The position numbers and the translations under genes were made by a program. From positions 66,402,001 through 66,466,000 of the forward strand of contig OX638156.1 in assembly GCA_951804945.1 (NCBI GenBank): DNA of 64,000 nt, in the 5' to 3' direction. Source of the DNA: Podarcis cretensis. Lineage: Eukaryota. The notes under the pieces are model-generated. The model made no database searches. It saw only the letters and a program-made list of their open reading frames with translations, and was not told the DNA's origin. Below, piece by piece: positions 14,093 to 58,874 of this stretch (position 1 is the stretch's first letter; the number at the start of each line of letters is the position of its first letter).

Positions 14093-14310
14093 ATGCTGTC
14101 CATGACGTACAGCGGGAGCCTCCGGAGCGTGGCCAGTAGGTGCCATTCAGAGTGGGGGCTGCACCAGATCCAGCAGACGGACACGGTGGAACTGCAGAGG
14201 CTCAGGGATGTCCGGGTGGCAGCCCAGGCCAGAATCAGGGAGGAGTTCCTGCGGATGCACGGGCTATCCCTGGACGAGTGTACAGCGCAAACGACCGGCA
14301 TGAAGTATAG
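14093..14310 (+). CDS. KCNAB2: KCNAB2 alternative N-terminal coding exon A (MLSMTYSGSLRSVASRCHSEW...TTGMKY/R)
   Basis: 218 nt from ATG to AG|gtaagc donor (phase 2), in frame with exon 34432. Candidate acceptor cacag| at 14071 gives a 21-nt leader. Resembles the MLSMTYSESLRSV... N-terminus of the long human KCNAB2 isoform as recalled. Confidence 0.93.
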
Positions 14311-16246: not shown

Positions 16247-16394
16247 NNNNNNNNNNNNNNNNNNNNNNNNNNNNNNNNNNNNNNNNNNNNNNNNNNNNNN
16301 NNNNNNNNNNNNNNNNNNNNNNNNNNNNNNNNNNNNNNNNNNNNNNNNNNNNNNNNNNNNNNNNNNNNNNNNNNNNNNNNNNNNNNNNNNNNNN
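16247..16394. other. Assembly gap (148 N)
   Basis: Run of N. Confidence 1.
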
Positions 16395-16684
16395 CCTGCC
16401 CATCTGGCTGGGTTTCCCCAGCCACTCTGGACAGCTTCCAGCAAAATAAATAGTTAAACCTACAGCTGAAATGCACAAAACCAGCAACTGCCAAAAACCT
16501 TAAGCTCCGGATTTCACGTGATAATAATTTGGTAGGTCACCAAGAAAATCTGGACTTGTCGTACTCAAAAGGCTTGGGGACCACTGCTTTTGGTGGTGTC
16601 TTATGCACATGGGAGATGGTTATGCTTCAGGGCTTAAAGAACAACTCGGTGACTACATGAGCAAGGCCCAATCCTGCGGCTGTA

Positions 16685-17492
16685 CAGTGGTACCTTGGGT
16701 TAAGTACCGTATTTTTCGCCCCATAGGACGCACTGCCCCAAAGGACGCACCTAGATTTGGGGGGGGGAATAAAGGGGAAAAAATTATTTCCCCCCCAGGC
16801 GCACGACTGGCGCGGGGGAAGCCTGAGCTTCCCCCGACCCCAGCCCCCAGAACAGGCTGCTGCCTGCAAGCCTTGAGAGCCCGGGGGGACCTCCCGCCGG
16901 GCGTGCGAGGCTTGCGGACATCTGCCCGAAGCACGGGGCGTGCTCCGCAGCGCGCCCCGTGCTTCAAGCTGCAGGGTGCCGCCCGCAAGCCTTGCGCACC
17001 CGGGGGAGTTCCCCTGGGCGCGCGAGCCTTGTGGACACCTGCGCGAAGCACGGGGCGTCCTCTGGAGGCGCCCCGTGCTCCATGCTGCAGGCTGAAGGGT
17101 CCCGCCGGGCGCGCAAGGCTTGCGGATAGTTTCCTGAAGCCTGGAGAGCGAGAGGGGACGGTGCGCACCAACGCCTCTCACTCTCCAGGCTTCAGCGAAA
17201 GCCTGCATTCGCCCCATAGGATGCACACACATTTCCCCTTCATTTTTGGAGGGGGAAAAGTGCATCCTATGGGGCGAAAAATACGGTACTTAATTCGTTC
17301 CGGAGGTCCTTTCTTAATCTGAAACTGTTCTTAACCTGAAGCACCACTTTAGCTAATGGGGCCTCCCGCTGCCACCGCACCACCAGAGCACGAATTCTGT
17401 TCTCATCCTGAAGCAAAGTTCTTAACCCGAGGTACAATTTCTGGGTTAGTGGAGTCTGTAACCTGAAGCATAAGTAACCCGAGGTACCACGG
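16685..17492. mobile_element. Tigger/pogo-like MITE (host of a nested insertion)
   Basis: TA|CAGTGGTACCTTGGGTTA ... TAACCCGAGGTACCACGG|TA. Confidence 0.85.
16707..17286. mobile_element. GC-rich Tc1/mariner MITE nested in the previous element
   Basis: TA|CCGTATTTTTCGCCCCATAGGACGCAC ... GTGCATCCTATGGGGCGAAAAATACGG|TA; internal GC-rich repeats. Confidence 0.9.
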
Positions 17493-18293: not shown

Positions 18294-18652
18294 GGTAAGG
18301 TAAAGGTAAAGGGACCCCTGACCATTAGGTCCAGTCGTGACCGACTCTGGGGTTGCAGCGCTCATCTCACTTTATTGGCCGAGGGAGCCGGCGTACAGCT
18401 TCTGGGTCATGTGGCCAGCATGACTAAGCTGCTTCTGGCGAACCAGAGCAGCACACGGAAACGCCGTTTACCTTCCCGCCGGAGCGGTACCTATTTATCT
18501 ACTTGCACTTTGACGTGCTTTCGAACTGCTAGGTTGGCAGGAGCTGGGACTGAGCAATGGGAGCTCACCCCGTCGCGGGGATTTGAACCGCCGACCTTTT
18601 GATCGGCAAGTCCTAGGCTCTGTGGTTTAACCCACAGCGCCACCCGTGTCCC
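18294..18652 (-). mobile_element. Sauria SINE, full length
   Basis: Reverse complement of the same consensus, with ggtaaaggtaaaggg tail. Confidence 0.93.
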
Positions 18653-20641: not shown

Positions 20642-20968
20642 TAAAAGGTAAAGGGACCCCTGACCATTAGGTCCAGTTGTGGCCGACTCTGGGGTTGCAG
20701 CGCTCATCTCGCTTTACTGGCAGAGGGAGCCGGCGTACAGCTTCCGGGTCATGTGGCCAGCACGACTAAGCCGCTTCTGGTGAACCAGAGCAGCGCACGG
20801 AAACACCGTTTACCTTCCCACCGGAGCGGTACCTATTTATCTACTTGCACTTTGACGTGCTTTCAAACTGCTAGGTTGGCAGGAGCAGGGACCAAGCAAA
20901 GGGAGCTCACCCCGTCGCGGGGATTCGAACCGCCAACCTTCTGATCGGCAAGCCTTAGGCTCTGTGGT
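20642..20968 (-). mobile_element. Sauria SINE, 5'-truncated
   Basis: TSD TAGGCTCCTAGG at 20630-20641 and 20969-20980. Confidence 0.92.
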
Positions 20969-26970: not shown

Positions 26971-27591
26971 AATGAACTGGCTCAGGGATCTGAGCGAAGG
27001 CAGGCAAGACTCCTCCCTATCATCCTCCTCACCATCAGTTCAGTGTCCTTCCCCCTGCTACCTCCCTCCATTCTGAATCAGGATGATTCTCATGAGAGAT
27101 TTGCTCCTCCTGGATTCATCTGAGTCTCAGTGACGCAGCTCCTTAGTCCCCCCTGAGAGTCACCGAGGGGGAATCACCCTCCAAGGAGATGACGGCTGCG
27201 GCTCCCAAATTAAACTGAAATCCAGCGCCGGGGATCCCTCACCCACGGAAGCACCCTAGGGAGATGTCCAAAGTCGCCACACTGCCAGACTGAGGAACTG
27301 GGTCAGAAGGAGAAGGGGGATGGCTGCTATTTGGAAGGGCAGTCAGCCTGGACCCCTTGTTTTTTGCCACTCCTGGATGGGGTAACGGGCCCGTTGGGGT
27401 TATTTTTCTGGGTTTTTTTTGTTCCGGGAGAGCATCCTTGCAGCTGCGTCAGGAGAATCCAGGTCTTGGGGAGAAGGTTTCTTTGGGAGACTTTTCTCCT
27501 CCTTTGACATATCCCGGAGAACAGGTGACACAGCGTCAGAGGAGACCAGGGCAACCTCTAGGTCGGGGCGGCGACACCAGAAGCAGGCAGG

Positions 27592-27797
27592 ATGCAAGTG
27601 TCCTTCGTCTGCTCGGACCACAACATCAAGAACCGGAGCGCGGAGGACCGGCTCAACCGGCAGAATGCCAACAGCCCCAGCACGCGGGGTCGGTTCCGGG
27701 CAGTGGCGATGGTGGCCCGGAGCTTGGGGCACCTCTCCGCGCAGAACGCCCCGTCCTCCAGCGACTCCAGTGTGAAGCAGACTGGCATGAAATACAG
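27592..27797 (+). CDS. KCNAB2: KCNAB2 alternative N-terminal coding exon B (MQVSFVCSDHNIKNRSAEDRLNRQ...KQTGMKY/R), Kvb1.1-like
   Basis: 206 nt from ATG (context aggATGc) to CAG|gtatgg, phase 2, in frame with exon 34432. CpG-rich; strong similarity to the Kvb1.1 N-terminus. Confidence 0.9.
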
Positions 27798-28942
27798 GTA
27801 TGGGGAGGGTGGGAGAAGCACCGTACATCCGGGAAGAGTTTGGGGACCGGTCGCTGTGCAGGGAGCAGGACCCAAATTCTGAAGTCTCCCAGAGCCAAAC
27901 TCTTGGGTCATTGCTCCATCCAACTCTGAATTGCTTGTACTGACCAACAATGCTCTCCAAGGGTTTTTCCAGCAAGGAATCTTTCCCAGCTTTACCTGGG
28001 GAGGCCATTGGGTTGTGCCTGCACAGCAAATGCTCTACCTCTGAGCTGCAGCCATTTCCCTACAAATAGTAGGGTCCAATCCTCATGGTTCTGAATGAAG
28101 TGCTGAATTAAATATCCAGCACAATATTGCCTGCACTGACTCGCAGCAGCTCTCCGGGGTTTCAAGCAGGGAGACTCTCCCAGCCTTACCTGGATATGCC
28201 ACTGGGGATTGAACCTGAGACCTTCGGTCTGCAAGACAGATGCTCTACCACTCAGCTACAATAGCAGTTCCCCAAAGCGCACACTTTGAAAAGCAGGCTT
28301 ACAACTGGCCAGCCATTGTCTGGATATGACAAAAGAAGCAGGTTGGATCCTTTCTTCCCTATACATGTGCTGGTTTCCCCCTGAAAATTGCATATATTTT
28401 TTCAGGTGCCGGCTTCAGCGGCAAAGAGCAGCTTTTGGTGGGGATGTTCTGGGGGGAAAGGGTTAAAACGAAGCCTATTAGCCATTGGAACATTGGAAGC
28501 TGCCTTCTGCCGAGTGAGACCATGGGTCCATCTAGCTCAGTGCTGTCTGCACAGGCTGGCAGCACCTTTCCAGGGTTTCAGGATCTCAGTCCTAACTGGA
28601 GATGCCAGGGATTGAATCTGCATGCTCTGCCACTGAGCTTACCCGCCTTCTGCAAATCTACCGAGGCCAGTGCTGTCCACATTGACTAGCAGGGTTTCAG
28701 AGAAGTGTCTTTCCCAGCCCTGCTTGGAGATGCCATTGGGGATTTAACCTGGGGCCTTCTGCATGCAGAGCAGGTGCTCTGCTACTAGGATACAGCTCAG
28801 CATGTTGGTAATGACTGGTGAAAACACAAGCCTGAGCAGGGTCCAGCTCTTATGAGTTTCCAGCGGTGGGGGTTGTAGGAGAACCCTACAAATCTCTTTG
28901 TCCCACCTCAAGAAAGGAGAAGCTGGGGAGAAGCACAAAGCA

Positions 28943-28994
28943 GGATGGATGGATGGATGGATGGATGGATGGATGGATGGATGGATGGATGGAT
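28943..28994. repeat. (GGAT)n microsatellite
   Basis: Seen directly; followed by a 19-bp unit repeated about 3 times (29018-29071). Confidence 0.98.
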
Positions 28995-29475
28995 AAATGG
29001 ATAGGATAGATCCATTCTGCAGAATTTAACTTTGGTTGCAGAATTTAATTTTGGTTGCAGAATTTAACTTTAATTTATTTGTGGGCTCCTTCCCCACCCA
29101 TCCCTTTCCTTGCCTTCTGTTGCCTCTGGATAGGCAGTGATCTGGACAGAAGTATAGTTGAAGCAGCCTGGAACTGCATTAGGGTTTTTGTTTGTTTGTT
29201 TTTGCTGCTACTGAATCACATTTAATGAGTAGAGAGCAGGTGATAGGCTGCCCACTCTGCTCCTTACCTAATCTGCTCCAATCAGCTGAGAGTGGAAATG
29301 TTCTTGCATCTTTCTCTTTGAGTTCATGCAGAAGTCAGGGAGAGAGCGTGAGGCAGGCAAGGATTTCTACAACAGCAAAAGAGAACGTTGAAGAAATACT
29401 ATGGGTACAAAAAAAAATCACAGGCGAAAACTTCACTTGAAAGGGAAATATTTAAACTGCTGAACCTCAGCCCCT

Positions 29476-29824
29476 GGGATGCAGGTGGCGCTGTGGGTTA
29501 AACCACAGAGCCTAGGGCTTGCCGATCAGAAGGTCAGTGGTTCGAATCCCCGTGACGGGGTGAGCTCCTGTTGCTCGGTCCCTGCTCCTGCCAACCTAGC
29601 AGTTCGAAAGCACGTCAAAGTGCAAGTAGCTAAATAGGTACCGCTCCAGCGGGAAGGTAAACGGCGTTTCCATGCGCTGCTTTGGTTCGCCAGAGGCGGC
29701 TTAGTCATGCTGGCCACATGACTGTACGCCGGCTCCCTCGGCCAATAAAGCGAGATGAGCGCCGCAACCCCAGAGTCGGTCACGACTGGACCTAATGGTC
29801 AGGGGTCCCTTTACCTTTACCTTT
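29476..29824 (+). mobile_element. Sauria SINE
   Basis: Same consensus, head to (TTTACC)n tail. Confidence 0.93.
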
Positions 29825-31055
29825 AAACAAAAGACACGTGCATGAAATCTGCTGCCCTCCTTTGCTTAACCTCTGTTGCTTTAATTTTCACCACCTTCAC
29901 TACCCTGGCTCTGATACCCAAACTAAGCAGGTTTGGAGGGGGCAGGGGAAATTTCACGCAGTTGGGGAGGTAAGGTTTTGCTCCAGCTACCCCCTGCCCC
30001 CCACCCCAGCAACATGCGCCATTTAGCAATTCGTGTAAAAACCCACAAACCCACCGGCTCTTTGCAAGCAAACCAGCAAGTTTGTGTTTAACGTTTGGTC
30101 CTTTGCACACGCAGAATTCCGTAGCAGCAGCAGCCAGAATGGTTTTTACATAGTTCTGTAAGAAAAAGGATCCTCCTTTGTGAATGGGGGTAGCCAGTGC
30201 AACGTCAGGAAACAGTTTTTGCATTAGCCTTATAAGGGCAGGTCCACACCATGCATTTCAAACACACTCAATGCACATTGAAAGCACATAACTTCCCCCA
30301 AGCAATTCTGGGAGCTATAGTTTATTAAGGGCGCTGGGAACTGTAGCTCTGGGAGGAGGCGACTACAGTCCCCAGGATTCCTTGGGGGAAGCTATGCATT
30401 TTAAATGTGCATTGGATGTCCTCTAAATGTATGCTGCAGAGCTGTCCTTACAAGCCAGAAATCCTTCTCTCTGTAAGTTTCAGCTGCTCAGCCTGTCTGA
30501 TGACAGTAAAAGAGGCTCCATTGCACTATTTGCCATTGTTTTAGATGTGCCGCAGCCTTGACCAAAGAGTCTTTTTCATAGCCAAAGACCCTGACATTCC
30601 CTCTTACGGACTTTCCATTCCCATCATGTTTTCCCATGCCAATATTAACTGCCATCACACTATGGGTGGCTAATATTTCTCAGTGATTAACCCTGGGCAT
30701 GGCACTCTTGAAATCAGTACCTGTGAGGGTGGGGTGCATGATTGCTTTGGAATGCTTTTTGGTGCTTTAAATGGTTTTGGATGCTCTAAATGGCTTTAGA
30801 ATATTTTAGGTGGTTTTTAAATGTTTTAAATGCAGCACACGTCTGTTTTAAATTGCATCGTTCCAACGCCGGCCGCGTTAATAAAATAAAATGGCCTTCG
30901 TAAGGAGATAGTTCTGTGGTCCATTTAGCAACATTGCTGTGGGCTTCAAGGCGCTCTGTCTCCTTGAATCACCCGTTTCCTTGAGCGGTTCACTGGCTGT
31001 TGTTAATCCGCCTGTTAATTGATAGATATCTTTTGAAGGGGTGGGAGCTCTGGAA

Positions 31056-31256
31056 GGGAGGGCTGTAGCTTAGTGCTAGAGAGCCTGCCTTGCATGCAGA
31101 AGGTCTCAGGTTCAATCCCCATTATCTCCAAGTTGGGCTGGGAGAGTATCCCTGTCTGAGCCCCTGGAGAGCCGCTGCCAGCCAGTGTAAACAATATGCT
31201 GATTTAGATTGACCAAGGCTCTGACTCAGTATATAAGGCAACTTACTAGGTTCCTA
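31056..31256 (+). mobile_element. Old tRNA-Ala(TGC)-derived SINE
   Basis: gggctgtagcttagtgctagag...ttgcatgcagaaggtctcaggttcaatcccc head. Other copies at 42186-42348(+), 35995-36172(-), 10800-10930(-), and several in 27925-28790(-). Confidence 0.7.
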
Positions 31257-33690
31257 AAGGCAGGGAGGAAGGAAGGAAGGGTGGAGAGTCTTTGCAGGCC
31301 TTCAAGATACAACGTCTTCAGCCGCAAGACCTCCCGCTCAAGCCTTCAGCCACTGATCTCGGGGAACCCTACCTAGATATCATAACCTTCAGGGTGTGTT
31401 TTTTTACCCATGGCCGCCTGCTCCTAGTGACTTGCCCACTGTAATTGACACCACGAGGACTTTCTCATAGGACATATTTGCACCCTGCATTTAAAGGACT
31501 ATGATAGTACCTTTTTATTTTATTTTTACAAGGCTTATGCACAAAGCTTGATTGCAAAACAACCCCGAAAGCGGCTTTACAAAGAGAACAATGCAATGAA
31601 ATTATCAGTAGAAACAACTCTTTACAATATTCAAAAAATAAAATCGGCAATATACTAAAATCGGATTGAAACATACATCAAGGTTCCACCGGTTTGTCTA
31701 AAGAAAAATGTTGTCTAAAGAAAAATGCTTGTGGGATGTGTCTAAAACAGTTCAGGGAAGGCACTTTCCTGGTGTCAATAGGCAGGGAGTTCCAAGATAT
31801 GTGTGCTGCCACAGTAAAAGGTTGATTCCTTACAAATGCGGAAAGGATATCAGGTGGTACCTGTGATGTTGCCAACTCTGCATGCATGGGGCAAGGCGAT
31901 TTCATAGATAAACTTGATGCGCTTCAGCCTGTTTCCTTCTTGGAGCATGGATGAGGGACATTAAAAGCCTGTGTGTTTCTTTTTCCCAAGGGGGAGGGAA
32001 AGGGGGGGGTGGGGAACCTTTTTGAGGGGCAGAGGGTCTGCTTGGGGTCGCTGCAGCTTGTTGGGGAGGTAGCTGAGGAATGGGGAATGGGGTGAAGTGT
32101 CTGGTGAAGTGTCTAGTGGTGGTATATGGGTGAAGTGTCTGGTGGTGGTATATTGTCATCCTCGCTCGTTTATTTGCAGTCAACTGAACATTTAAACAAT
32201 TAATAACAATTTTCTGCCAATAGACGCATAGGCCTCTGAGAACACATTTGTGGAATGGGACTTTTGTTTAAAAAGGTGAAATGACTTAAAAGTTAAATGT
32301 AATAAAATAGACGTTCGGTGCCACTGTGGGTGGGAAGACAGGTTGCAAAAACAAATGCAAAATTCAGCTGCGTATGAATCACGGTTTATAAGCGATATAT
32401 GCTGCAATTTTTTTAAAAAGCACAATTTTTAAAAATCAACAATCAATAATATATTTTTTTTAAATGCACATTAATGCAAATGAAAAACACAGTATGAAAA
32501 TGCGTCATGGTATATGTATACGCTGTGTAAGATGGAGCTCGTTCTTGCTGCTCCAGAGGGCAGGACCCAAAGAATTGGATTCAAATGACAGGAAAGGAGA
32601 TTCCGACTAAACATTAGGAAGAACTTTCAGGTGGTAAGAAAGGTTTGGCAGTAGAACAGAAGAAGGCAGCAGACTTTCCTTCACTGGAAGTCTCAAACAG
32701 AGGCTGGGTGGCCATCTGTCAGGGATCCTTTCACTGTGATTCCTGCATTGCAGGGGGTTAGACTAGATGACACTTGGGTGCCCATTCCAACTCTGCAATT
32801 CCATTATGCGATTCTATACCAGCTGATATACTACTTAGCATCGTTATTCTGTGTTTTTCAGTTGCGCTAATGTGCGTTTCTACTAATTGTTTCAATCTGT
32901 TGATCTGCAAATAAGATGATGATGATGGAGATGAGGTCATAAGGGGGGAACACCCGGTGTGCACAGGGGAAGGGGACTAGAGCTCTGAGCAAAATTTTGA
33001 GGGTGTGGGAAATGGCCTGGCCATGTCGCCTTACAAATAAGAAATTTCTGGATCATCCAGGAACCAAACTTCCTCTTCCTCGCCCCCCCCCCCCACACAC
33101 ACCCTGCCCCAGGCTGATGGCTGGCCCTTTCATGTGGAAGGTCAGAAAATGCTGAGAGGTGTTGGAGCCGCCACAAAATATTTAGTCTGCGGCTTGCAAA
33201 AAGTGACAGACAGCTCAAAGCAATGCATCACACGAAAACATGCACAGAATCTCCCCAAGGGCCCGTCCTGGGTGTTCCTCTGCCAATCAAGCTCTGATGG
33301 CAGCATTTGAACCTGAGAGAACCCCGTGAAAATCGTTTGTGTAGGATTATTCATATATGTAGCCTTGTAGGATTTATTCCCTAAACGCCAAATATTATGC
33401 ATATTATCTTGGCAATCTTCACAGCAACCCTGTATGCTATGTTGGAGTTACCATCACCATATTACCTTGCTGGGTGTGTGTGGAATGCACTGAATGTTAT
33501 TACAGTATTACCCATTACTGCATTTGTATCCCACCATTTTCTCCAAGAAGCTCGAGGTGGCATGTGTGGCTCTTCCACTCCTCGTTTAATCCCCATAACA
33601 ACCCTGTGAGGTAGGACAAGTCCAGGGAGCTTCATGGCCAAGTGTGGATTTGAACCCTGGTCTCCCAGGTCCCAGGTCAACCCTCTAACC

Positions 33691-33949
33691 CATGGGGAGG
33701 TAAACTAAGGCCTGGGGGCCGGATCTGGCCCAATCACCTTCTAAATCTGGCCCACAGACGGTCTGGGAATCCGCATGTTTTTACATGAGTAGAATGTGTC
33801 ATTTTATTTAAAATGCATCTCTGGGTTATTTGTGGGCAATAGGAATTCATTCATTCCCCCCCCCCAAAAAAAAATAATACGGTCTGGTACCCCAGAAGGT
33901 CTGAGGGACAGTGGACCTGCCCCCTGCTGAAAAAGGTTGCTGACCCCTG
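33691..33949 (-). mobile_element. hAT MITE, same family, inserted in a SINE
   Basis: 8-bp TSD CTCTAACC at 33683-33690 and 33950-33957. Confidence 0.88.
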
Positions 33950-34431
33950 CTCTAACCACTACACCACACTGGCTTCCCCAGTTGATGCCTCAAGGTGAAC
34001 TTGATGTGATGTCAGGAGATCTCTGATTCCCCTGGGAAAGAGTCCAGTTTGGCAAACCCTGCCGTTGCCTTTTCTCAATAATTATTTTGCAAACCAAGAA
34101 CAGACCAGGGAAGATCCAAGCCCAGGACTCCTGATGTCAGTTCTCTAGTTCCACCAGGGATAGGGTCTAACCCAGCTGGAGAAGGAGGTTTCCCTGTGTC
34201 TGATTCTGCATGATTATGAAAGCACCAAATGGTATATCCCCCCCCCCCCGCCTCCTCCTCTCTCCTTCCCTTCCCTTCCCTCGTGTATCTTTTGAGGGAA
34301 ACACAAAATGCTGATCGGAACTGAAACGACATCTGCTCTCTGTAAGCATCGGTGCGAAGATGCCAATGGCCAGTGTCTATTTCCGACATTTCCATCTGCC
34401 TATTAAAAGGTGGTGTTGTTGTTTTTTCCAG

Positions 34432-34475
34432 AAACCTTGGGAAGTCAGGACTCCGAGTTTCCTGCCTCGGGTTAG
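34432..34475 (+). CDS. KCNAB2: KCNAB2 first common exon (R/NLGKSGLRVSCLGL/G)
   Basis: ttttttccag| acceptor, 44 nt, |gtaagt donor; Kv-beta core start. Confidence 0.97.
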
Positions 34476-36368: not shown

Positions 36369-36406
36369 GAACATGGGTGACATTTGGAGGACAGATTACG
36401 GATGAG
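36369..36406 (+). CDS. KCNAB2: KCNAB2 exon (GTWVTFGGQITDE)
   Basis: ttttgtag| acceptor, 38 nt, |gtaaga donor. Confidence 0.97.
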
Positions 36407-37554: not shown

Positions 37555-37587
<33 letters not shown>

Positions 37588-37618
37588 CCTCAGGACCTCA
37601 TCTCTGCCTCTCTTTCAG

Positions 37619-37698
37619 ATGGCGGAGCAGTTGATGACCTTGGCCTATGACAACGGCATCAATCTCTTTGACACGGCGGAAGTCTATGCTGCAGGGAA
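37619..37698 (+). CDS. KCNAB2: KCNAB2 exon ([27 protein letters not shown]), AKR catalytic Asp and Tyr
   Basis: tctttcag| acceptor, 80 nt, |gtaggt donor. Beta2-diagnostic residues (beta1 reads VAERLMTIAYESGVNLF). Confidence 0.98.
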
Positions 37699-38850: not shown

Positions 38851-38895
38851 GGCTGAAGTCGTGTTAGGGAATATCATTAAGAAAAAAGGATGGAG
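38851..38895 (+). CDS. KCNAB2: KCNAB2 exon (AEVVLGNIIKKKGW/R)
   Basis: tcttgtag| acceptor, 45 nt, |gtaact donor. Confidence 0.97.
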
Positions 38896-39597: not shown

Positions 39598-39642
39598 ACG
39601 TTCCAGCCTGGTGATAACAACCAAAATCTTCTGGGGAGGAAA
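39598..39642 (+). CDS. KCNAB2: KCNAB2 exon (RSSLVITTKIFWGG/K), AKR catalytic Lys
   Basis: ccttgcag| acceptor, 45 nt, |gtacgt donor. Confidence 0.97.
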
Positions 39643-40041: not shown

Positions 40042-40085
40042 AGCCGAGACGGAGAGAGGACTCTCAAGAAAGCACATTATAGAAG
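40042..40085 (+). CDS. KCNAB2: KCNAB2 exon (AETERGLSRKHIIE/G)
   Basis: accccag| acceptor, 44 nt, |gtaaga donor. Confidence 0.97.
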
Positions 40086-41194: not shown

Positions 41195-41539
41195 GACGCA
41201 GGTGGCACTGTGGGTTAAACCACAGAGCCTACGACTTGCCGATCAGGAGGTCGGCGGTTCGAATCCCCGCGACAGGGTGAGCTCCCATTGCTCAGTCCCT
41301 GCTCCTGCCAACCTAACAGTTCGAAAGCATGTCAAAGTGCAAGTAGATAAATAGGTAAAGGAAGGTAAACGGTGTTTCCGTGCGCTGCTCTGGTTCGCCA
41401 GAAGTGGCTTAGTCATGCTGGACACATGACCCGGAAGCTGTACGCCGGCTCCCTCGGCCAATAAAGAGAGATGAGCGCTGCAACCCCAGAGTCGGCCACG
41501 ACTGGACCTAATGGTCTGGGGTCCCTTTACCTTTACCTT
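41195..41539 (+). mobile_element. Sauria SINE
   Basis: TSD TACCACTATGAA at 41183-41194 and 41540-41551. Confidence 0.93.
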
Positions 41540-43642: not shown

Positions 43643-43729
43643 GCCTGAAGGCTTCGCTAGAACGGCTGCAGCTGGAATACGTGGACGTGGTGTTTGCTAA
43701 TCGGCCAGACCCCAACACGCCCATGGAAG
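43643..43729 (+). CDS. KCNAB2: KCNAB2 exon ([29 protein letters not shown])
   Basis: ccctgcag| acceptor, 87 nt, |gtaggt donor; contains the Kv-beta Asn of FANRP. Confidence 0.98.
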
Positions 43730-48540: not shown

Positions 48541-48585
48541 GGAACCCATTTAGCTCTTCCAAGTCGCGAACATTCATCATAGAAG
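48541..48585 (+). CDS. KCNAB2: KCNAB2 45-nt cassette exon (G/NPFSSSKSRTFIIE)
   Basis: Polypyrimidine tract plus caccag| acceptor, |gtacat donor, symmetric phase 1-1, no stop. Matches the GDPFSSSKSRTFIIE insert recalled from the long human isoform. Not in the ORF track. Confidence 0.9.
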
Positions 48586-52161: not shown

Positions 52162-52247
52162 AGACGGTGCGAGCCATGACCCACGTCATCAACCAAGGGA
52201 TGGCCATGTACTGGGGGACGTCGCGGTGGAGCTCCATGGAGATTATG
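52162..52247 (+). CDS. KCNAB2: KCNAB2 exon ([29 protein letters not shown])
   Basis: tttttccag| acceptor, 86 nt, |gtattg donor. Confidence 0.98.
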
Positions 52248-53284: not shown

Positions 53285-53405
53285 GAAGCGTATTCAGTGG
53301 CTCGCCAGTTCAACCTCATCCCGCCCATCTGTGAGCAAGCAGAGTACCACATGTTCCAGAGAGAGAAAGTGGAAGTGCAGCTTCCAGAGCTATTCCACAA
53401 GATCG
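53285..53405 (+). CDS. KCNAB2: KCNAB2 exon ([40 protein letters not shown])
   Basis: ctctatag| acceptor, 121 nt, |gtaagc donor. Confidence 0.98.
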
Positions 53406-54912
53406 GTAAGCGTGTGCGGAAGCTGCCTCTTGGATGCCAGCAAGGCTGAATAAACACGGCAGAGGTGATGCTGCCCTGCTGAGAGAAAGGGGTGCCATGC
53501 TCTTAGCTTGGGTGAGGCTGCTTGCTTTAGTACAGCTGACAAGAGGCAGAAGGGGTCAGCAAGTACAGATTCCCAGGGCCCAGCGGTCCAGAATGGGGGC
53601 TCAGAGTCTCTCAGCCTAACCTACCTCGCAAGGTTGTTGTTGTGGGATTAATTGAGGAGAAGGGGGGAAACACGTAAGCCACCTTGAGCTCCATGGAGGA
53701 CAAAGTTTGGGATGCAATAAATAAATAACAGAACTTGAGCAAGGGGTGAGGATGGAACAGTTTAGCATCCTTCCCCGCCCCAGTACCGGTAGCCCAGGGC
53801 CTGATTCAGCACACACTCCACGGGGGCTTTAACGTTTATCCAAAACATCCAGGCCATGTGACTGGAGTTCTCCTGCACATCTCCCATCCGGTTTGGTCCT
53901 TAAATCCCACCCTGCCCAAGGCTCAGGGAAGCAACAGGATGGAAAGCCCAGCATCCTGGCTGCTCCCCCGTGATCTGCTTCCCACAGGACCCCAAAAAGC
54001 AGTTATTTGGGGAAACTGTTTTGCTTAACCTTTTTTGCCCTGCTGGCTCAAAACTGCAGCTTGGGATTAAGAGGCTTTCAGCATATTAATTATCATTAAT
54101 AAAAATGTCAGAGAGGGGTCAGGAGCAGCGGCCTTTCCTCTGAATCTTTAATCCTGTCCCAATGAGCCAGCTTTGACCTCGCCATCCTAGCCTCTCTGAA
54201 CTGGCTCTGCAGGGGCTGGAGGTCCCTGGGCTGCCCTTTTACTGATGGTAAAAAAAGGGCTGATCAGTGCCTGGCTGTACAGACCCCCTTGTATTCCCAT
54301 CAGTGGGAGAAAGGCGAGATAGGAATGTAATAAAATAAAATGCGTTTTAAAGAAACACACAAAGGGGGGAAAGATGGAATTAAGTCACACAGTCACGCAC
54401 ACACGCACACCACTGGTTCTAGGGGATTAGTCAGATTCAAGGATGATGGTGATGATTATGCCACCCGTCTGACTGGGTTGTCCTGGCTATTAAAGGGAGT
54501 TTATATTCTACCTCCTTAAATGGTTTAGGACTGCAATACTTCAAGGGCTGACTCTCCCCATATGAACCAACCCAGACCCTGAGATCATCCTCTGAGGCCC
54601 CTGTTTGTGTGCTGCCTCACAGTAACAGGCCTTTTTTGCAGTGGCTCCACGTTTGTGGACTGATCTCTCCAGGGAGGTTTGTCTGGCACCTTCATTATAT
54701 ATCTTTAGGCACCAGGCTAAATCTTTCTTCTATAGCCAGACCTTTGGTCTTTAATTAACTGTGGCCTTTTAGAAATGAATGGGATGTTTTTAATAGATTG
54801 CTTTTTTCCATTTCATTTCACTTTTAATTTGTATACCGCCTTTCTATATTACTATACTCAAGGTGGTTTACAAGCTGAAGAAACAAAATAGACAGCAAAG
54901 GTCACACACATA

Positions 54913-55315
54913 CCGTATTTTTCGCCCCATAGGGCGCACCTAGTTTTTTTGGGGGGGGGGATAAAGCCCAAGCTTCCCCCGACCCCAACCCCCAGAACAG
55001 GCTGCTATCCGCAAGCCTAGGGAGCCGTGCGGGAACTCCCGCAGGCTTCCCAGGCTTGCGGATATCTGCCCGAAGCCCGGGGTGCGCTGCTTCAGCACAC
55101 CCCGGGCTTTGGGCAGCAGGCTGCTATCTGCAAGCCTAGGGAGCCGTGCGGGATAGCTTCCTGAAGCCTGGAGAGTGAGAGGGGACGGTGCGCACCGACT
55201 CCTCTCTCTCTTTCCAGGCTTCAGCGAAAGCCTGCATTCGCCCCATAGGATGCACACACATTTCCCCTTCATTTTTGGAGGGGAAAAAGTGCGTCCTATG
55301 GGGCGGAAAATACAG
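54913..55315. mobile_element. Second copy of the GC-rich Tc1/mariner MITE
   Basis: Same TIRs and subterminal sequence as 16707-17286, TA flanks, shorter internal array. Confidence 0.9.
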
Positions 55316-55818: not shown

Positions 55819-55913
55819 GTGTGGGCGCCATGACGTGGTCCCCTTTAGCATGTGGAATTGTTTCGGGGAAATACGACGGGGGGATCCCTCCCTACTCACG
55901 AGCATCGCTAAAA
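55819..55913 (+). CDS. KCNAB2: KCNAB2 exon ([32 protein letters not shown])
   Basis: cccttag| acceptor, 95 nt, |gtgagc donor; WSPLA NADPH-binding motif. Confidence 0.98.
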
Positions 55914-56459: not shown

Positions 56460-56580
56460 GGCTACCAGTGGCTGAAAGACAAGATCTTGAGTGAGGAAGG
56501 GAGACGGCAGCAAGCCAAGCTGAAGGAACTGCAGGCCATCGCTGAGCGGCTGGGCTGCACTCTGCCCCAACTTGCCATTG
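56460..56580 (+). CDS. KCNAB2: KCNAB2 exon ([40 protein letters not shown])
   Basis: accgcag| acceptor, 121 nt, |gtaagt donor. Confidence 0.98.
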
Positions 56581-57481: not shown

Positions 57482-57570
57482 CATGGTGTTTGCGGAACGA
57501 AGGGGTCAGCTCTGTCTTGCTGGGGGCTTCCAATGCAGACCAGTTAATGGAGAATATTGGAGCAATACAG
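57482..57570 (+). CDS. KCNAB2: KCNAB2 exon ([30 protein letters not shown])
   Basis: cctccag| acceptor, 89 nt, |gtgagc donor. Confidence 0.98.
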
Positions 57571-58784: not shown

Positions 58785-58874
58785 GTTCTTCCAAAACTCT
58801 CCTCTTCTCTTATCCATGAGATCGACAGCATCTTGGGCAATAAACCCTACAGCAAAAAGGACTACCGGTCCTAA
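58785..58874 (+). CDS. KCNAB2: KCNAB2 last coding exon ([29 protein letters not shown])
   Basis: cggcag| acceptor, 90 nt to TAA; beta2-type C-terminus. Confidence 0.98.

Follow-up and report, generated by a model that had tools for sequence, protein, structure and literature searches.

The window, meaning the whole stretch of 64,000 nucleotides of Podarcis cretensis DNA that was analysed, carries on its forward strand the core coding exons of a Kvβ potassium channel subunit gene, preceded by two alternative first coding exons. The first exon at 27592-27797, which we call the ball exon, encodes an N-terminus of the Kvβ1.1 type. The isoform starting from it comprises 14 exons, all with AG/GT borders, and amounts to 1191 nt, that is, 396 codons plus a stop codon at 58872-58874 (the figure is the sum of the exon lengths, the exons having been searched one at a time and not as a joined model). 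The features of the gene within the window, with the evidence for each in brackets, were as follows.

14093 to 14310, + strand: second alternative first coding exon, MLSMTYSGSLRSV...EEFLRMHGLSLDECTAQTTGMKY plus 2 nt, donor gtaagc (conservation)
27592 to 27797, + strand: alternative first exon, 68-aa Kvβ1.1-type N-terminus with MQVSFVC, C7, H10 and R32/F35/R36/R43 (ORF, donor, homology)
34432 to 34475, + strand: first of the shared core exons, (R)NLGKSGLRVSCLGL, providing the acceptor of both kinds of alternative first exon (splice borders)
36369 to 36406, + strand: core exon TWVTFGGQITDE with the β2 signature ITDE (splice borders, signature)
37619 to 37698, + strand: core exon of 26 residues (MAEQLM...) with β2 signature (splice borders, signature)
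38851 to 38895, + strand: core exon AEVVLGNIIKKKGW (splice borders)
39598 to 39642, + strand: core exon RSSLVITTKIFWGG (splice borders)
40042 to 40085, + strand: core exon AETERGLSRKHIIE (splice borders)
43643 to 43729, + strand: core exon of 28 residues (splice borders)
48541 to 48585, + strand: optional 45-nt cassette GNPFSSSKSRTFIIE, outside the 396-codon count (AG/GT borders)
52162 to 52247, + strand: core exon of 28 residues (splice borders)
53285 to 53405, + strand: core exon of 40 residues with the equivalent of Kvβ1.1 E265 (41/41 to 1QRQ)
55819 to 55913, + strand: core exon of 31 residues (splice borders)
56460 to 56580, + strand: core exon of 40 residues (splice borders)
57482 to 57570, + strand: core exon of 29 residues with the equivalent of Kvβ1.1 E349 (splice borders, alignment)
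58785 to 58874, + strand: last coding exon, 29 residues plus stop (splice borders)

The optional cassette sits between ...NTPME and ETVRAM, and the same 15-mer was present in models from Callorhinchus (P0055) and Pogoniulus (P0053). Just 5' of the MAEQLM... exon, at 37560-37600 (+), lies a microsatellite of (AC)n type that reads THTHTHTH in translation.

Identity of the gene

We compared the 13 core exons with known and predicted Kvβ proteins, counting whole codons summed across the exons (319). The results showed that the core was identical at 317/319 positions to the gecko "voltage-gated potassium channel subunit beta-2 isoform X1" (P0128, XP_056720882.1, 396 aa), at 306/319 to a halibut β2 model, at 301/319 to a stingray β2 model and at 256/319 to mammalian Kvβ1.1 (P0076). 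The stretch 53285-53407 (exon 53285-53405 plus 2 nt) was identical to rat Kvβ2 in PDB entry 1QRQ at 41/41 residues, and two single core exons matched the TIGR01293 Kv_beta model with E values of 4e-22 and 7.5e-16. A diagnostic core stretch of 19 residues was of β2 type in the window, versus ISDEVAERLMTIAYESGVN in Kvβ1.1. Among the proteins beginning with MQVS[F/L]VC that retained this stretch, the β2 signature ITDE.AE...T.AY.NG.N was found in all but 5/75, and those 5 carried ISDE; the MQVSIAC protein had the β1 core signature. Because of the near-complete match to the gecko beta-2 protein, the lower match to Kvβ1.1 and the diagnostic stretch, the core was assigned to Kvβ2. At the level of sequence, these comparisons confirmed the gene as a KCNAB2 orthologue, in agreement with the β2-type core proposed in the preliminary description.

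The same proteins bear "beta-1" in many of their automatic names, which would favour assigning the gene to KCNAB1 or KCNAB3 rather than KCNAB2, and both KCNAB1 and KCNAB3 are known to carry MQVS balls. However, the core was 99.4% identical to beta-2 models and only about 80% to Kvβ1.1, one exon matched rat Kvβ2 without a mismatch, the β2 signature was present, and the ball peptides grouped apart from the KCNAB1 balls. Such a misassignment is hardly credible, and the "beta-1" names represent similarity naming driven by the N-terminus. UniProt and NCBI gave this automatic name to many ball-bearing KCNAB2 models (P0100, P0103, P0115, P0123, P0134 and many teleost models). These names seem to follow the N-terminus, so that searches for the gene name would miss the KCNAB2 ball isoform.

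The ball exon and the other first exons

The ball exon begins with an ATG at 27592, with an in-frame stop 30 nt 5' of it and an A at -3, and the letters of the window give 68 open codons (MQVSFVCSDHNIKNRSAEDRLNRQNANSPSTRGRFRAVAMVARSLGHLSAQNAPSSSDSSVKQTGMKY) plus 2 nt (AG). Its peptide is laid out as MQVSFVCSDHNIKNRSAEDRLNRQ...RGRFRAVAMVARSLG...KQTGMKY, followed by AG and the donor gtatgg at 27798, so that the 3' border reads AG/gtatgg (27797/8). At the acceptor ...ttttttccag/AAACCTTGGG at 34432, AG plus A completes an Arg codon and the frame reads on as NLGKSGLRVSCLGL. The 27797-34432 junction is in frame, as …GMKY-R-NLGKSG…. Both the open 68-codon exon with its phase-2 donor and the in-frame join yielding 396 residues, as previously proposed, could be read directly from the window. 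The exon coincided with a local CpG enrichment that was modest (GC 0.59, o/e 0.6 vs a window median of 0.28).

A PDB search with the ball peptide returned no match. Pfam and NCBIfam searches with both first exons (27592-27797 and 14093-14310) also returned no match, placing these N-termini in no modelled family. A search of sequencing runs identified four runs from one organism, of 1.3-1.6 Gb each, that contained all sampled words of 27450-27800; the size of these runs hints at RNA or capture data.

The second first exon, at 14093-14310, shares its phase, its acceptor and the ...TGMKYR end with the ball exon and contains EEFLRMHGLSL. It was 78% identical to the N-terminus of a Mus pahari "beta-2 isoform X3" (P0257) and had conserved counterparts in Lerista (where it shares a contig with the ball/β2 model of that species), Ophiophagus and Anolis (spliced to NLGKSG). 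We take its end (...EEFLRMHGLSL.E.T...TGMKYR) to resemble Kvβ1.2 (KCNAB1 exon 1.2), as a lead only. The canonical N-terminus MYPESTTGSPARLSLRQTG... (elephant model P0229) had no match in the 64-kb window, where the best tblastn result (E 0.06) was a chance one, and a motif search of the 64-kb window for MYPESTT... gave chance matches only. The canonical Kvβ2 first exons are probably upstream of position 1. These sequences suggest that KCNAB2, as KCNAB1 does, has several first exons to choose from, an arrangement that would have been inherited from before the duplication.

An N run occupies 16247-16394 of the window. A CpG-rich block at 16.5-17.5 kb was considered as a promoter and rejected, as it reads like repeated, transposon-like sequence and has a peptide motif that recurs near 54.9 kb. 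The GC- and CpG-rich block (16600-17330, both strands) adjoins the N run and has long ORFs on both strands with internally repeated peptide motifs; with its motif YRIFRPIGRT recurring near 54850-55100, the block looks like an interspersed repeat or transposon. In addition, one short interspersed element was present in three copies, at 18323-18457, 20665-20799 and 41379-41513 (-), and similar translated strings from it were chance tblastn matches.

Distribution and constraint of the ball exon

When the 68-aa peptide served as the query of a word search, 52 short proteins were retrieved; birds, one turtle, one sturgeon and many teleosts were represented, together with a GC-rich group. The GC-rich ORFs, which came from Logan/ENA contigs and carried the ball peptide, look mammalian. 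A phmmer search against 1.84 billion cluster representatives yielded 56 matches; the best beta-2 model had an E value of 1.7e-26, and Kvβ1.1 had one of 1.3e-9. These matches included full-length bird models with the ball N-terminus on a β2 core, and KCNAB1 balls at about 51% identity. When residues 1-71 of the bird model P0054 were used as the query, 121 full-length proteins with PF00248 were obtained. They came from a chimaera (Callorhinchus), a stingray (Hemitrygon), bichir, gar, paddlefish, many teleosts, a caecilian, turtles, tuatara, squamates, birds and mammals, and one teleost cluster among them had 335 members. The mammals were wombat, Mus pahari, Cricetulus, Bison, Equus, Fukomys, Pteropus, Tupaia and grey whale. 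A cluster look-up added further carriers whose N-termini were checked, namely Tiliqua, Protobothrops, elephants and Otolemur. The squamates with the ball exon on a β2 core were Euleptes, Gekko, Lerista, Tiliqua, Protobothrops and Podarcis, which covered every squamate model seen.

Across these collections, the peptide MQVSFVC…FRAVAMVARSLG…GMKYR stood on a β2 core in more than 100 gene models, and ...MKYR was joined straight to NLGKSG in 110, all of them automatic predictions that may propagate one another by homology. As judged from these predicted proteins, the ball exon is ancient and belongs generally to vertebrate KCNAB2, also in mammals. The preliminary description had implied that this locus is unusual; its exon on a β2 core recurs from chimaera to mammals, and that part of the description was not upheld. 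Its guess that automated annotations list the isoform proved right, one example being the 396-aa Euleptes protein XP_056720882.1. The sequence of the ball exon is accordingly not new, since public predictions include this 396-aa gecko isoform.

We then placed the peptide among 128 distinct ball peptides in a quick maximum-likelihood tree. KCNAB2-linked and KCNAB1-linked balls were split by one branch with an SH-aLRT support of 100; the tree labels were set by a motif inside the peptide, and the independent support for the split is the link to the core type. Within this tree, the window ball peptide was sister to that of Podarcis muralis (97% identity), as befits DNA from a lacertid-like lizard. 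An alignment of 26 sequences, from ray to mammal and with four KCNAB1 balls, showed that M1, Q2, V3, S4, C7, FR.VA..ARS.G and GM..R were invariant in all rows. Conservation was confined to the exon at both edges. In upstream-extending ORFs, mean identity was 6.5% over the 15 residues before Met1 vs 57% over the first 20 ball residues, and in genomic read-through ORFs it fell from 50% over the last 20 exon residues to 14% over the first 15 past the donor.

These data provide strong protein-level evidence pointing to purifying selection on the ball exon. By sequence comparison, the corresponding KCNAB2 exons of all sampled jawed vertebrates are orthologues of the ball exon, and KCNAB1 exon 1.1 is its paralogue. 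Firmer than the functional reading is the evolutionary one, in which the alternative N-terminal exons predate the KCNAB1/KCNAB2 split and were kept in both genes for more than 400 million years. Of the earlier interpretation, the KCNAB2 orthologue and the intact Kvβ1.1-type exon in the right phase were retained, and the peculiarity of the locus was dropped; the exon is, in addition, under long-term constraint.

The exon could also be intact in this species simply by descent while being untranscribed or unspliced, in which case only ball-less Kvβ2 would be made. The modest degree of CpG enrichment is compatible with this. However, the frame, the ATG and the donor are intact, the peptide is 2 changes away from that of Podarcis, and the exon was retained in every squamate model seen. 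Since an exon of this kind would not keep its frame open in every lineage, the explanation is disfavoured, and we consider it very unlikely. We infer instead that the ball exon would be transcribed in this lizard and would have an electrophysiological effect.

Predicted function and comparison with known Kvβ subunits

We compared the ball exon with the mammalian Kvβ1.1 N-terminus (P0076) by BLASTP. The results showed 35/73 identities with an E value of 9e-21, far beyond chance. The Kvβ1.1 start quoted in the preliminary description agreed with P0076, and the alignment with Kvβ1.1 bore out the retention of the hydrophobic tip, Cys7 and the basic ARSLG segment. The free hydrophobic tip, MQVSFVC, is encoded by codons 1-7, starting at the initiator Met. 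In Kvβ1.1, hemin acts via the 7CxxH10 motif, whose C7 is the cysteine that responds to redox state (PMC7239824). Both C7 and H10 were present in the window ball, and C7 was invariant in the 26 aligned sequences.

The ball of Kvβ1.1 reaches to about residue 34; its chain residues R37 and R48 dock on core residues E265 and E349 once NADPH is oxidised, and its Ca/calmodulin site consists of R37, R41, R48, F40 and F53 (PMC4614385). In the window, R32, F35, R36 and R43 align to Kvβ1.1 R37, F40, R41 and R48, and the equivalents of core E265 and E349 are kept. The position of Kvβ1.1 F53 is Leu48 in the window and Leu in all β2 balls, leaving the calmodulin site incomplete. Because of this F53 to Leu change, Ca/CaM control may be absent and is in any case doubtful, and F53 to Leu together with I5 to F and A6 to V means that kinetics and Ca/CaM control may differ from those of Kvβ1.1. 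The kept tip, C7/H10, arginines and core glutamates make pore block, redox and heme sensitivity and NADP+ coupling plausible. Overall, N-type, redox-sensitive inactivation by a ball-bearing Kvβ2 is plausible from its residues.

According to the proposed mechanism, the Kvβ2 aldo-keto-reductase (AKR) core would dock on the T1 domain of Kv1 channels, and after opening the free tip MQVSFVC... would enter the inner pore and cause fast N-type inactivation. Cys7 and His10 would make this pore block sensitive to oxidation and heme, and the core glutamates could hold the chain residues R32/R43 once the bound NADPH has been oxidised. The N-terminus of the product would be set by the first exon and its promoter, with a choice among the ball exon, the Kvβ1.2-like exon at 14093-14310 and the canonical MYPESTT... 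exon outside the window. On the whole, we think it probable that 27592-27797, a genuine and ancient alternative first exon of KCNAB2 that encodes an N-terminus built like the Kvβ1.1 ball and chain, gives rise to a ball-type Kvβ2 of 396 aa acting in this way.

The exon might also be real and conserved but serve mainly in something other than pore block. The FRAVAMVARSLG segment and the tip would then regulate the AKR core, bind calmodulin or a partner, or steer trafficking, with weak or no N-type inactivation. In line with this, the chain segment of Kvβ1.1 binds Ca/CaM and the core (PMC4614385). The strictest invariant block of the ball exon is the chain FR.VA..ARS.G and not only the tip, and conversion to A-type currents by Kvβ2 was not found in the searched literature. 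Kvβ3.1 and Kvβ1 variants act on some Kv1 partners only. However, residues 1-13 match the tested Kvβ1.1 ball at 8/13 positions and the other five are conservative. Over about 450 My, M1-S4 and C7 have not changed and H10 hardly has. Moreover, conservation begins exactly at Met1, and a pore blocker needs a free N-terminal tip. We therefore regard a main role other than pore block as improbable.

In the brain, no Kv1 auxiliary subunit is more abundant than Kvβ2, which is treated as the non-inactivating one. Reportedly, a "Kvβ4" has been cloned from Xenopus. The reviews and papers that touch on the point describe Kvβ2 as being without an inactivation peptide. No description and no electrophysiology of a ball-bearing Kvβ2 were found in the searched literature, nor was any functional study linked to the predicted beta-2 ball models. 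Novel but unspecified Kcnab2 junctions were reported in mouse trigeminal neurons (2026 paper, PMC13589356).

We put the chances at about even that the ball-bearing Kvβ2 is functional and cell-type-specific in all jawed vertebrates, including mammals, and turns Kv1 delayed rectifiers into redox- and heme-sensitive A-type channels. If this is true, the textbook statement that Kvβ2 does not inactivate would hold for the canonical isoforms only, and KCNAB2 would keep the whole ancestral set of N-termini (1.1-like, 1.2-like and ball-less), a set older than the KCNAB1/KCNAB2 duplication. The ball-bearing Kvβ2 would add an uncharacterised member to the Kvβ ball family, on a paralogue regarded as ball-less. 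If KCNAB2 does encode ball and Kvβ1.2-like isoforms, then the KCNAB2 promoter in use in a given cell may influence some A-type Kv1 currents, as well as knockout phenotypes and excitability traits linked to KCNAB2.

Among known systems, the window ball is like that of Kvβ1.1 (KCNAB1 exon 1.1) in having MQVS at Met1, C7, H10, K13/R15, EDRL, R..FR.VA..ARSLG and the KQTGMKYR end, and the two share the splice phase and the acceptor exon (NLGKSG...). It differs from Kvβ1.1 in lying on the KCNAB2 paralogue, in the I5 to F, A6 to V and F53 to L changes, in a linker 5 residues shorter, and in a Ser-rich SAQNAPSSSDSS where Kvβ1.1 has HHISLKEST; the Kvβ1.1 balls also form a separate group in the tree. 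The second first exon of the window likewise differs from Kvβ1.2 (KCNAB1 exon 1.2) in that it lies in KCNAB2.

The predicted beta-2 isoform X models (XP_056720882.1 from Euleptes, A0A670IMA0 from Podarcis, XP_065277263.1 from Emys, XP_035007649.1 from Hippoglossus and XP_021055678.1 from Mus pahari) have the same exon on the same core. The Podarcis ball differs from the window ball at 2/69 positions, and the Euleptes gecko model has the 396-aa length of the window isoform and 317/319 of its core. Unlike the window, these models are automatic predictions from other species, and many of them are mis-named "beta-1". From NLGKSG on, the AKR core of the canonical Kvβ2.1/2.2 isoforms (367/353 aa, MYPESTTGSPARLSLRQTG...) is identical to that of the window isoform; their N-terminus is without a ball and gives no fast inactivation, whereas the window isoform carries a ball.
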